DNA of 50,793 nucleotides from Selaginella moellendorffii (taxonomy: Eukaryota > Plantae > Lycopodiophyta). How positions within the stretch are numbered: the stretch's first letter is position 1; each line of letters starts with the position of its first letter. A program made the translations under genes and the position numbers. The notes under the pieces are model-generated. The model worked only from the letters and a program-made list of their open reading frames with translations, did not search any database and had not been told where the DNA came from. Below, piece by piece: positions 263-50,793 of this stretch. The DNA is taken from contig NW_003314278.1 in NCBI RefSeq assembly GCF_000143415.4, positions 1,098,122 to 1,148,914 on the forward strand, written 5' to 3'.

Positions 263-1657
263 TGTAAGTGACTAATTTTTCCATTCTACTTTAGTTACTT
301 AACCACACTTCCGACCACTTGGAGGAGTTTCATTCACAACCTCCATAAGTCCAATTTAGGACTTGGGGCTTGTTAGCCCCAAGAATGGCATCCATGCCAC
401 TCAACCTTTGCATTTGGTCCAAGTGCTTCACATGTTCGATCCCATGATTGACACCCCAAGGTACCATTGACATATTGGCCCATTACACTAAAGCCATGCC
501 CCTTCACCTTGGTCACACTAGTGGTCTACCACCACTTGCATCACAATCCCGTCTCTTAAAAACTAGGCCATCCATCCATGAGTGATCATCCCAGATACTC
601 CTTAGCATCCTTAGGATGCCTGCAGACATAGGGAATAATTTTCCCCAATGTCCCTTTTCTGGTCCCCACCAAGTCCCTTTTTGTCCATGGCCATGTTCGT
701 CAACACTGCCACTGGATCAAGGCCCACAGGCCCGACCACTAAGTCCCACGGTCCTCTGGGACTTCCTCACCACATGACCGTATCCTTGGTCATTGCCCCA
801 GAGGACTGCTCCTCTTCCTTTCCACAATCTAGGACTTTGGGACAACATTTCGAAACACCGTGGCCTTATGCGAGTCTCATGGGTACTCTCCCCACCTTTT
901 GCCTTTGGGTGCTCTAGCCATGGGCTTAGAGTGAGGTTCCATTGAGCCACGCTAGGTATCTAAGTAGGTAGTGCCACCCATACTTGGATTGGGAGCATCA
1001 ACCATTTGATCTCTCGGGGGAACTAGAGCCACCTCTTGAACACTTCACCAAGATGCCCCACTTGTCGGTCTGCATTCATTCTAGTCTTGGACTTCCCAAT
1101 GGTCAACTCATCACCCAACACCTAGGTATAGCCTTCCTAGGCCAAACTGGCTCCACTGGGCTCCAACCCTCACACTCTCCCTACTATACTTTTGGAACCC
1201 CCTGTAGCGCCCCCCCCCCCCCCCCCGGGGGACAATTGTTTTGGGCTTTCACCCAATAGCCTGTATTAGTATTCGGACTCGGACTCAGACTTGATCTAAG
1301 TCTTGGTCTCGACCTTGGACTTGGACACGGGCTCGGTCTCGGTCTCGGGCTTTGGCTTGGTTTCATCTCGGACTCCATATCTTGGGTCCATCTCAGATTC
1401 CATCTCAAGTCCATCTCAGACTCCATCTCGGGTCCTTCCATGTGTCCTGTGTTGGTCCTCTTGTGTCCCTTTTCTAGAGACTCATTTATTGCTTGTTTTG
1501 TGCTTATTCTTCAAGCACTCTGTTGGGAGTTTACTCTTGACCTTTCAAGTTGGAGCTTTTAGTCCAAACGTGTTACACTCGTTTGGCTTTCACTTTGGGC
1601 ACCACTATGTGGTGCTCCTTCGGGTCCACTTTGGGGTTTAGGGATTTGTGTCTCACA
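263..1657 (-). mobile_element. Solo LTR (1395 bp) of a gypsy family related to the element at 48213-50656
   Basis: TG...CA ends; 5-bp TSD ttctc (258-262)/tcctc (1658-1662); terminus tgtaagtgactaatttttcc resembles tgtaagccacaaatttttcc at 49926 next to a minus-strand PBS; internal motifs shared with that LTR. Confidence 0.85.
1272..1435. repeat. Degenerate hexamer array (GACTCG/GTCTCG/CCATCT) in the LTR U3 region
   Basis: Visible short tandem units. Confidence 0.7.
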
Positions 1658-24945: not shown

Positions 24946-25546
24946 TGCGGCGATTGTTCAGAGACACTGGCGGGGGCCCCGGGAAGAGTTATCTTTTCTT
25001 TTTAACAGCCTGCCGACCCTAAAATCGGTTCAACCGGAGATAGGGTCTCACAGCTGGCAGAGCACCGCACGTCCTGTGGTGTCCGGTGCACCCTCGGCGG
25101 TCCTTGAAAATCTGGAGGAGCAAGTGCTGAGCTTGCCCAGTCGTACTCATAACCGTATCAGGTCTCCAAGGTGAGCAGACTCTAGTTGATGGAACAATGT
25201 AGGTAAGGGAAGTTGGCAAATGGATCCGTAACTTTGGGAAAAGGATTGGCTCTGAGGGTTGGGCTTAGGGGTGTGTGGCTTGACCTTGTAGGCTGCTGGC
25301 GGTCTGCCTGAGCTGCTTGTGTGGCAAGGGCAGGCCACGGCGTGCCGACCTGGTGATGGACACAGAACACCCCTCCCCGCAGGGGGCATTCCCTAGGCAT
25401 CGAACAACTGACTCAGAACTGGAACGGACAAGGGGAATCTGACTATTTAATTAAAACAAAGCATTGTGATGGTCCCTGTAGATGTTGATGCAATGTGATT
25501 TCTGCCCAGTGCTCTAAATGTCAAAGTGAAAAAATTCAACCAAGCA

Positions 25547-44262: not shown

Positions 44263-45113
44263 ATGACCTGTTTAGTATTTGCACACATATCAATTTTGTT
44301 ATATTTATATTCTTTATTTTCCACAATACCTATCTTTTATGGCTTCAGTTAAGTTATAGTCATTTACACCTTTGAGTGTTTCTTCAATTTAGGCACTATA
44401 TTTTTTGGTTTGCTTAAGCAAACCAGCATAGAATATACCTGGGTATTCTTGAATATTCTATAATTTAATTATTGATATTTATTTAGAATAATTTTGTGTT
44501 TATAAATTAAAAACATTTTAATACTGGTCATCATGTTGTATAGTTGACTGACGGTTTCGGTAAAAAGAAGTTCTAATTTATTTTCAAACCTTTTAATTCT
44601 AAGAATTACCAGTTCAAATAAGTTGCACGGATCCTCGTCTTTATCATTTCCCAAGTGGCCACTAATCCTTTATTAACCTCTATTGTTCTCCACCAAAGTT
44701 TAATATTATCTGTCAAGTATAGTTTAGCATATGGGACCTTCTCCAAACTCAATAATAAAAACACTCAAAAATAATCCTCCATATCGTAAAATCAATCTTC
44801 TACCACCTTATAGTCATTCATGTTTGCAAGTGTGATTTTGTGGTGATGAAGCAGGAGCAACAGAAGATCCTCCAGACGAGCTAACTTCTCAAATTTAACC
44901 AGCTGCCACCCCCATGCAAGGGTACTTTCCACGAGCTCAAATGATAGAGGGCTAGCTCTTGATTTTTTTTGGTTGTTCTCTAGGCTCCAATCTATTAGGA
45001 GTGATGCAAAGAGACTGTTATTGATCAGGCCAGGGATTTCCAACCCAAAGCTATGTTTCTCATACCTGAAAACTGTATCCATGAAATATACATATCCTCT
45101 TGTAGTTTCTCTT

Positions 45114-47180: not shown

Positions 47181-48212
47181 CATTTGAGGTGAAAAGGCTA
47201 CTGATTGCCGGAAAGCAGAAAGAGGCTTTACGGGCTGCTCAAGACGGGCAACTTTGGGGATGTGCTCTTCTTATGGCCGAGAGAAGGTACCTTGTCTTGT
47301 AGCTTTGATGTATAGACCGTTAGTGATGGTCTTGTGGTTTTTAATAGGTCTACACCGACACTACAGCGGAGATGGCTCAACCAGGGTTTCAGCAGCAGTA
47401 CAAAAGCTGTTTTGTCTCATGGTGCTACACGACGGGAACAAATATGTCCTTGGTTCTAGCTACATAATAGCGCTTCAACCTCAACCGGTTCCAGCATCTG
47501 CTGTAGATGGTGCAACACAGGTAAAATACTTTTATCAAGCTACTCTCTTGCTTAAGGAGTGCATGTTGACTTGCAGGACCCAGTAGAAGGAATGCTTGAA
47601 GAATGGCAGGAAAACCTGGCTATAATGGCAGCTAACCGAACTAATGGGGACGAGAGAGTGATTATGCATCTTGGTGATTGTCTCTGGAGACATCAAGATG
47701 AGGTATATACATGGTCACACTTTCATGTTTCTCATAGTTTTAACTTGCAGATATGTGGAGCCCATATTTGCTATCTTGTTGCAAATGCTAGTTTTGAGCC
47801 TTTCCCCTTCTGCCAGACTTTGTCTTATAGATGCCGACCATTGTAAGTATCCATGCACGTACGCTAGTCCAGAAACTATCCAGGTAAGCTGTGTTTGTCC
47901 TCAATAACAATTGTTAACCTTTTCTTCATCAGCAAATGGAAGTGTACGAATTTGCAAGAGTGACTGGCAATTCCCAGTTTATTTTACTTCCTTTTCAGCC
48001 ATACAAGCTTATTTATGCGGCAATGCTTGCTGAAGCTGGAAAGATAAATGAAGCTTTAAGGTTGGTAGTGATTTTTAACTGTATCCTTAAGGTTTCTCTT
48101 CGAAGGTATTGCCAAGTGGTGTTGAAAACATTGAAAACAGTAAGCCATGCAGCTGATGTGTGCAAAGAAGCGGCTGTAGCCTTGGAAGAGCATCTTCATA
48201 TCCACTCTGAGG
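47181..48212 (+). pseudogene. SEC16: SEC16 (protein transport) conserved-domain fragment with introns
   Basis: EEWQENLAIMAANRT, HLGDCLW, AHICYLVA, YASPETIQ, EVYEFA..GNSQFILLPFQPYKLIYA; truncated by the gypsy element. Confidence 0.85.
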
Positions 48213-50656
48213 TTTGTAATCGGACACTCGGCTTTTATACTCACTTTCCTGTTCCTGGGCATTCGCCAGTACCACAAGGTTCCTACCTTGTCCATGCAGG
48301 GCTACCACGAACCGATTGAACCAATCCATTCCAAAGATCACGTCAAATCCCGCCATGTCTAGCACAGTGAAATCCATGTTTACTTTCCATGTCCCTACTT
48401 CGACTCTCACTTGTCGAAGTACCTCATCAGTGCTTTGGTTACCTTGAACAAACTCTATAGTCCTTGGTTCGCCTAGCCGCTGCACCGTTAGTCCGGCTTG
48501 CCGGACTATGTCTACAGCCACAAAATTATCCGAAGCACCCGTGTCAATAAGGATCTTAACAAAGCTACCTCTGAGCTTCCTTCGAAGGGCTAGTAGATGT
48601 CGCGAACGACTCTCTACCAAAGTTGCTCGTGTAATGAGTAACTTTGAGTTAGGGATTAGATCACATACCTCAATTTGGACTTCACCCGACTTGATGACTA
48701 TATTCTGGCCTCTGGCCTTCTTCGAGTAGGGACATTCCCTCGAAAAGTATCCCGCTTCACCGCAGTTGTAGCATATGTTGTTTCCCACGCTGCTATACGA
48801 TTTGACCTTCTTATCCGTGGGTTTGTCTTTTTTCGCTTGACTCCCCCACGTACTCGCTTGCTGGGCACTGAATTTGCCTTTCCGGAACCCCGAAGACTCA
48901 TTCTTAGAGAAACTCTTCTTGAATTTCCCTCTGCTATACGTTCCTCTTGGATTGGCCCCTTTGCTAAACATGGATCCCGACCCCGTCGTGTTCCCCTTTC
49001 ATAGGTTATCATTGAAATGCACCTTGATGGCCGCATCCAACACTTCCTTGTAGTTGGTTTCAGCACATCACCTCACCGCGAGCCCAGGTTTGCAAACCTG
49101 ATATGAAGGCATGGAACGCATCCATATCCCCCATGTCCGTGACAAGTATCGTCTTTTCCATGAACCCATTCACATATTCCTGGATGGTTCCAGTCTGCTT
49201 CAGCCTACTCAACTCATCTCTCAGATGTAGAGTGGCATTCGGAGGAATGTATGTTGCACGGATCCTCGCCTTCATCATGTCCCAAGTGGCCACTGGTCCT
49301 TCGTTGGCCTCCGTCGTTCTCCACCAAGACTTGGCATTATATTCCAAGTATGGTTTTGCACATGGGACCTTCTCCGAGCTCGGTAATCGCAACGCTCGGA
49401 AGTAGTCCTCTATATCGTAAAACCAATCCTCCACCACCTTATAGTCATTCACTCCCTTGAAGACCGGTGGGGGCTTTGGTTTGTACTTGGGAACTGCCTG
49501 AGGGACTGATTCTACTTCGGTCTGTTTGACCTTGTTTGGTTCTGCCTCAGTCCCTGCTGAAGGGTCTGCACCTTCTGTGCTGCCAGCATCCGCAGTCTTT
49601 CTCTTTTTCTTCTGCTTTTCATCACGCTTTAGCTTGCGTACGAGAGTCTCCAGCAGGGCATTGGTCTGTGCCAACTGTCCTTCTAACACATTCAATCGAG
49701 CCTTGGACGACCGAACCTCGCCACCAGACTCCTGTTTGGAAGTTTCCTCACTAGAGTCCTCCTCATGCAAGGATTCCTCACCCATAGCCTCTTGTTCGAC
49801 TGGAGGCTCCAGCTCCGGCGGAAGTTCCGTCTCCGCCTGGGTTTGCTTACGCCCTGCCCTTGCCATCTCCCAGCAATCCGCCTCTATCTTTCGCTAGAAC
49901 TGGGGAAAAGGCTCCGATACCAAATTGTAAGCCACAAATTTTTCCTTTCTAATTTGCCAACTTACCTCGTCTATCCGACCTCCACTGCCTTGGCTTGTGC
50001 TAAGTTCCCTTTCCAAGGTTCTCGCCTATTGTACCAGCTCCTACTTGGTCCTACTTGCTTTCAGCTACTCACTGCATGAGCAACAGAGTGTTAGCCATCC
50101 ATCTACGGATTCCCAAATCTCTCCCAATCCCCCTCCCCGGGTTAGACTGGACTTAAGGTTCGGCTACACTCCCCACAAGCACAAGCAGCCAAGCACACTA
50201 AGCCTCTAAGTTCCTAACACCCCTTGGTACAACAAGACTTGATCATGGGACCCTCTAAATCCCAAGCCTTGGGTGCAGCACTTGCTTCGGGACATCGGGG
50301 CGAAACACCGTGGCCTAACGGCCCGGTATGGGTACCTCTACCCCCCCACTTCCATCCTGAAGGGAAGGCCCAAGCCCCTAGGAAGGGCGAGGACCAATGA
50401 GCCGCAAGGTACTCAAGTGGGGCACCACTCCACATGAGCCGGGAGCACCGCAGTCGGTTTCCCTTTCGGGAGTGGGAGCTGCTCTTGAACACTTCCCTGG
50501 GTGGCCCCTCCGGCACCACCCAAGCCCATGCTCACTCCCACCCAAGGCCCCTCGGTCCCAGTCCCAACCTCAAGTCAGTTTGGGAGCCCCACTGGAGAGT
50601 CCCTTCTAAACTGGTTCCTGGACCTCACTATCCCTACTATACTTTTGGAACCCCCT
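48213..50656 (-). mobile_element. Ty3/gypsy element 5' portion (LTR, PBS, gag, zinc knuckle, protease), 3' truncated
   Basis: gag 49060-49866; CYNCGEAGYFSREC; ILIDTGASDNFV; tRNA-Met PBS 49911-49922 (rc tggtatcggagc); LTR from 49926. Confidence 0.9.
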
Positions 50657-50793
50657 TGTAAGGAACCAACTCGCCGAGGTGTCGTACGCTAAAGGAACCC
50701 CGAAAGCATGACCAAAATGACAAAGAGTTCATCGGATGGGACCAAGTCAAAGATGTTCGAGTCCAAGACCGACTCTAGGACCGAGTTCGAGAT

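Follow-up and report, generated by a model that had tools for sequence, protein, structure and literature searches.

The stretch of Selaginella moellendorffii DNA analysed here (the window, 50,793 nt) holds a decayed rDNA unit, a solo LTR and a retrotransposon with gag and protease ORFs, and all three carry a motif that resembles a plant rRNA transcription start site. This raises the question of why a protein-coding LTR element should contain such a motif, and whether its RNA is initiated there. A sequence-only reading of the locus had reported a 20/20 match between the LTR of the retrotransposon (element B) and the rDNA spacer, had described the motif as selectively conserved and placed where the genomic RNA should initiate, and had implied the use of RNA polymerase I (Pol I). 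The match itself was confirmed: positions 50626–50645 on the plus strand are the exact reverse complement of 22269–22288, a third copy with one mismatch is present at 1173–1192, and the number of matches expected by chance for the 20-mer is 0 (100 shuffles). The 20-mer was absent from the metagenome and viral contigs scanned. The features of element B are as follows.

50626–50655, minus strand, core block of 30 nt, identical to the rDNA spacer copy at L002:643–672
49927–50793, minus strand, 5′ LTR of element B (LTR B), ending ..CTTACA at 49927, with the U3 end beyond the end of the window
49910–49924, minus strand, primer binding site (PBS), tRNA-iMet type
49060–49866, minus strand, gag ORF (Retrotrans_gag)
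48087–48971, minus strand, zinc knuckle and aspartic protease ORF (RVP_2)

The core block is located inside the 5′ LTR, in sense orientation and upstream of the PBS and gag, as would be the case for an LTR core promoter. Element B lies on the minus strand with both gag and protease ORFs, and the motif is in the rDNA sense on the same strand, hence it is directed toward gag as had been claimed, at a measured distance of 702 nt from the PBS (49924–49910; previously given as about 700 bp). The PBS is one mismatch away from TGGTATCAGAGC, the usual tRNA-iMet-type sequence, and the element is truncated after the zinc knuckle/protease ORF. A search for 5S rRNA-like sequence with Pol III boxes (Rfam) found none in LTR B or the solo LTR, the sole 5S sequence being at 20320–20438. 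A gag fragment of 204 nt at 44618–44821, 80% identical to 49250–49451, is the remnant of a second related element.

The true match to rDNA is longer than 20 nt. A second spacer copy (L002), a 1290-nt Logan contig retrieved via an ORF across the spacer module, is 93% identical to window positions 21650–22950, and LTR B matches it at 30 of 30 positions (50655–50626 vs L002:643–672), covering about −20 to +10 around the presumed start (32/33 by blastn). The additional length was revealed by L002 because the window’s own spacer has acquired mutations immediately before the 20-mer; there, the bases of L002 agree with the LTRs and differ from the window’s spacer, and the mutated stretch (22250–22268 vs L002:624–642) hid 10 further bases of LTR identity. 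Within the core block, TATAGTAGGG is found at 50641–50632 (minus strand), the same 10-mer being present in the rDNA spacer copies, with the presumed +1 A at 50635 and the TATA at 50641–50638. A chance origin of the match was rejected, as no matches were expected in the shuffles and none of 20,000 column shuffles of the LTR alignment described below reached 30.

Whether rDNA was the donor depends on what the motif is in the spacer, where the following features were annotated.

20320–20438, plus strand, 5S rRNA gene in the spacer, linked arrangement (Rfam)
22182–22310, plus strand, promoter-like module of the rDNA spacer, with the 20-mer at 22269–22288
24336–24997, plus strand, 18S gene remnant with an internal deletion (decayed rDNA unit)

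The unit is decayed, with the 5S gene followed by the internally deleted 18S and then 25S fragments. The presumed +1 A of the spacer is 22279, which is 2057 nt before the 18S start, and the motif is flanked by upstream tandem subrepeats (20718–21726) and a 5′ ETS with repeats of 336–384 nt. Moreover, the window and L002, whose spacer copies are independent, both have it where a start would be expected. TATAGTAGGG has been described as the TIS sequence for rDNA in Avena (PMC5407837), and it fits the plant rRNA start-site consensus TATATA(A/G)GGG, in which transcription initiates at an A (PMC7928365; also PMC4043768, PMC5560572). From position and consensus we infer, on good grounds, that the spacer motif is a true rRNA start; taken together, the spacer position, the Avena sequence and the fit to the plant consensus favour rDNA as the donor of the motif. 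A telomere-type repeat (CCCTAAA, 2.7 units), similar to a telo-box, was also observed at 21828–21846, ~430 nt upstream of the presumed rDNA start, and it is kept in L002.

The conservation of the block was assessed by comparing three LTR sequences, namely LTR B, the solo LTR and the LTR of L001, a Logan relative of element B that is 77% identical to it over LTR, gag and protease.

263–1657, minus strand, solo LTR (S), carrying an rDNA-like module of ~120 nt with its core at 1203–1173

The solo LTR shows TG..CA termini and a target duplication of 5 bp in which a single position differs (ttctc/tcctc), and is inserted in an RVT_1 reading frame. Its sole blastn match to LTR B is a 31-nt block (97%). 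The two LTRs are homologous nonetheless, having common termini (..CTTACA) and collinear islands at equal spacing in a global alignment, and an independent capture of rDNA by LTR B was rejected on these grounds. Identity over the whole alignment is 47.6% vs 30/31 in the block, and the next-best 31-nt window scores 25/31, a marginal value that was reached in 620 of the 20,000 column shuffles. None of these shuffles reached 30/31 (maximum 28). The core block contains 14 G/C positions and no CpG, hence its conservation is not explained by a lack of mutable sites. The earlier description of two LTRs that are patchily similar yet have an exact string in common was thus accurate, the string being 25 nt long (50632–50656 = 1179–1203). 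Two more islands of LTR B and the solo LTR, at 50302–50318 (16/16) and 50484–50497 (14/14), lie at equal spacing from the block.

The comparison with L001 gave a different picture. Here the block shows four changes and is 87% identical, vs 80% for the flank, hence it is barely better kept than its surroundings. Selective conservation of the motif is therefore supported by the deep comparisons, with the solo LTR and with rDNA, but not clearly by the closer one, in a sample of three LTRs. In the DNA run X1, among the best 40 of 127 rows of differences, a 79-nt gap free of listed differences surrounds the block; it is no longer than other such gaps and so does not bear on conservation. A protein-based collection of LTR copies yielded one relative by gag search and none by a search with an ORF inside the LTR, and exact look-ups of the window’s gag and protease ORFs returned no matches.

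The LTRs also differ in how much rDNA-like sequence they hold. The solo LTR has 119 nt in common with the rDNA spacer (80%) and L001 has 97 nt (76%), both keeping the upstream part of the promoter, whereas LTR B upstream of 50656 has no blastn match to the spacer and is 36–39% identical to the modules of the solo LTR and L001. As LTR B is unrelated upstream of the block and 80% identical to L001 downstream of it, it is a mosaic that retains no more of the rDNA-like module than about −27 to +12. L001 is likewise a mosaic, S-type upstream and B-type downstream, with the changeover at the block. Furthermore, a copy with a B-type U3 joined straight to gag (49568–50654 missing) was observed at L001:1677–1767.

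Transcripts of the element were sought in sequencing runs, of which X15 was guessed to be RNA; 26 Mb of contigs and one spliced contig agree with this guess. Contig 10 of X15 covers 50614–50111 and contig 9 covers 50084–49966 joined to 49899–49003 (depth 7.9–8.0), with nothing upstream of 50620 in the X15 contigs. The sequence skipped in contig 9 is the following.

49900–49965, minus strand, leader intron of 66 nt (GTAAGT..CCCCAG), skipped exactly in X15 contig 9

The GT-AG skip shows that the RNA strand is the minus strand, which is the element’s sense, and indicates spliceosomal processing, on the evidence of one contig from a run guessed to be RNA. The leader intron contains the last LTR bases and the whole PBS, hence a spliced RNA without the PBS could serve gag translation and could not prime reverse transcription. 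Its donor is not conserved in L001. Contig 10 reaches 5′ to 50614. This position lies downstream of the 20-mer by 12 nt, of the presumed +1 A by 21 nt and of the first T of the TATA by 27 nt. A contig gives the minimum upstream extent of the RNA, and 50614 is compatible with an initiator-type and a TATA-directed start alike. Consequently, the claim that the motif is placed where the genomic RNA initiates is compatible with the data, insofar as X15 is RNA, but falls short of proof.

Raw reads of two RNA-seq runs (X21 and X22, 59 and 24 reads) all fell at 50111–50468 and came from a variant copy, with no pile of read starts found among them. Beyond 50111 and 50468, where their ends are loose, these reads continue into unrelated sequence, which indicates an LTR fragment inside another transcript or in a rearranged LTR variant.

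On this evidence, we consider it probable, with appreciable room for doubt, that 50655–50626 is a core promoter/start-site element of the LTR derived from a captured rDNA promoter, and that Pol II is the polymerase most likely to use it. An ancestor of these LTR families would have taken up ~120 nt of a host large-rRNA gene promoter, roughly −90 to +30, most of which the solo LTR and L001 still carry. On the way to LTR B, unrelated U3 sequence would then have taken the place of the upstream part, with about −27 to +12 surviving. The block would have persisted because copies losing it presumably fell silent and died out. The element would be transcribed from a point at or shortly downstream of the block, through an R-U5 of ~700 nt into gag, with part of the RNA being spliced in the leader and so losing the PBS.

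Two observations favour Pol II. Intron removal has been treated as a marker of Pol II transcripts, and Pol II is reported to be able to transcribe from a plant rRNA promoter (PMC7928365), hence the splicing of the element’s RNA points to Pol II, which may use the TATA/initiator-like rDNA core. In addition, the Arabidopsis Pol I promoter needs, and is satisfied by, −55/−33 to +6 (PMC7928365); LTR B possesses the start-site motif but lacks the upstream part (−55/−33), which argues against Pol I for this LTR. The use of Pol I implied by the earlier reading is therefore unsupported, the RNA being spliced and the upstream half of the rDNA-like promoter having been lost. One point counts against Pol II, which is that 30 nt of identity to rDNA exceeds the needs of a Pol II TATA box or initiator.

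That same excess is an argument for the alternative in which the block is a target of Pol I and its core factor, and the element is transcribed by Pol I, either exclusively or in parallel with Pol II. The block would then stay identical to rDNA in order to remain usable by the species-specific machinery that serves both. Identity at all 30 positions from −20 to +10 would be accounted for, the shortfall of 21 nt between the presumed +1 and the contig end is typical of RNA-seq assemblies, and Cassandra elements provide a parallel, as their LTR copy follows changes in the host-gene promoter of 5S (PMC10946416). Against this, the spliced form is the sole RNA form seen, LTR B is without the −33 to −55 region needed by the Arabidopsis Pol I promoter, and an uncapped RNA would give poor gag translation. 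We therefore regard transcription by Pol I as unlikely here, and give an equally small chance to the wider proposition that a protein-coding LTR lineage uses the host Pol I start-site element as its initiator and keeps it identical to rDNA base for base. A role outside transcription is improbable, though it touches on the mosaic structure of these LTRs: the block could have been kept as a short homology for strand transfer or template switching, for example between co-packaged RNAs of different LTR families, and would thus be a recombination junction. All three LTRs are mosaics, with the switch in L001 falling at the block. In run X1, divergence sets in exactly at 50656 in 27 contigs, numerous rare joints stop at the block edges (50622/50625 or 50655–50658) and one variant has 50623–50655 replaced by two letters. 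However, families that are 50% different can cross over nowhere but in the one stretch they have in common, hence the conservation may have dictated the breakpoints instead of resulting from them, and the junction variants are rare (depth 100–460 vs ~1.4 million summed).

The direction of transfer could also be reversed, with the rRNA genes having taken their promoter from an LTR, or the premise could be wrong and the motif not be an rRNA start at all; the spacer would then hold a fragment derived from an LTR. The presumed start site of the spacer was placed from position and consensus, and short repeats of the GAGTCCGAG type border the common module in spacer and LTR alike, either of which would fit such a history; we nevertheless judge it quite improbable, as the motif bears the signature of rRNA start sites found in distant seed plants and stands where expected in both spacer copies. 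Least credible, and in our view very improbable, is the absence of any selection, whereby the block would be a recent patch (micro-conversion) or a chance survivor in a few copies. The ordinary decay of the block in L001 and the small sample would be expected in that case, but the flanks are ~48% identical on both sides and offer no homology to support a conversion tract, and neither the column shuffles, with their complete failure to reach 30/31, nor the base composition of the block suggests that it was spared by chance. The reading we favour thus remains that of a captured rDNA core serving as the LTR promoter, probably for Pol II.

Elements that carry a piece of a host rRNA-gene promoter inside their LTRs are already known in Cassandra (TRIM) and in Ajax of ribbon worms, and element B resembles them in this respect. 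Cassandra is non-autonomous and contains the internal Pol III promoter of 5S, whereas the piece in element B comes from the upstream promoter/start site of the large rRNA genes, its LTR is without 5S similarity, and the element encodes gag and protease. Compared with the plant Pol I core promoter, the block of LTR B likewise has TATAGTAGGG and is identical to the spacer of its own species from −20 to +10, but the LTR is unrelated upstream of about −27 and its RNA was seen spliced. An ordinary Pol II core promoter in U3 would share with LTR B the conserved island in sense orientation and the spliced RNA, and the contig that begins 27 nt after the TATA would be compatible with it; LTR B differs in that the block reproduces the start region of host rDNA exactly, with 30 nt conserved rather than a short box. 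Pokey, a piggyBac element of Daphnia, also holds sequence derived from the rDNA spacer, but this is a DNA transposon whose IGS repeats are internal, with no start-site block in an LTR.

A 2024 review of relations between rDNA and transposable elements covers LTR elements with 5S promoters (Cassandra, Ajax), the spacer repeats of Pokey, and SINE28, and lists no 35S/45S promoter in any transposable element. Our own literature search found no published case of a Pol I promoter in LTR elements, and the only host rRNA-gene promoter that transposable elements are known to have borrowed is that of 5S (Pol III). Dependence of an LTR family on a start-site block of the large rRNA genes would, if confirmed, be a new route to a strong promoter, one that may be hard for the host to silence. 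It would also provide a natural test of the minimal plant Pol I promoter (about −27 to +12 in this case) and of its use by Pol II, and a marker for co-evolution of rDNA and transposable elements. Were Pol I to prove the polymerase, the family would parallel, with Pol I, the Cassandra elements and their use of Pol III. Loss of the PBS with the leader intron further suggests that separate RNAs serve translation and replication.

In run X1 the family is very abundant, with a summed LTR depth ~2× that of gag. Short repeats of the GAGTCCGAGACC type fill the U3 of the LTRs (1274–1440, 50750–50793 and L001:1760–2040), and are found too in the rDNA spacer just downstream of the motif (22310–22335). 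L002 has an extra 18-nt unit of the GGAGTCCGAG type downstream of its start-site motif.
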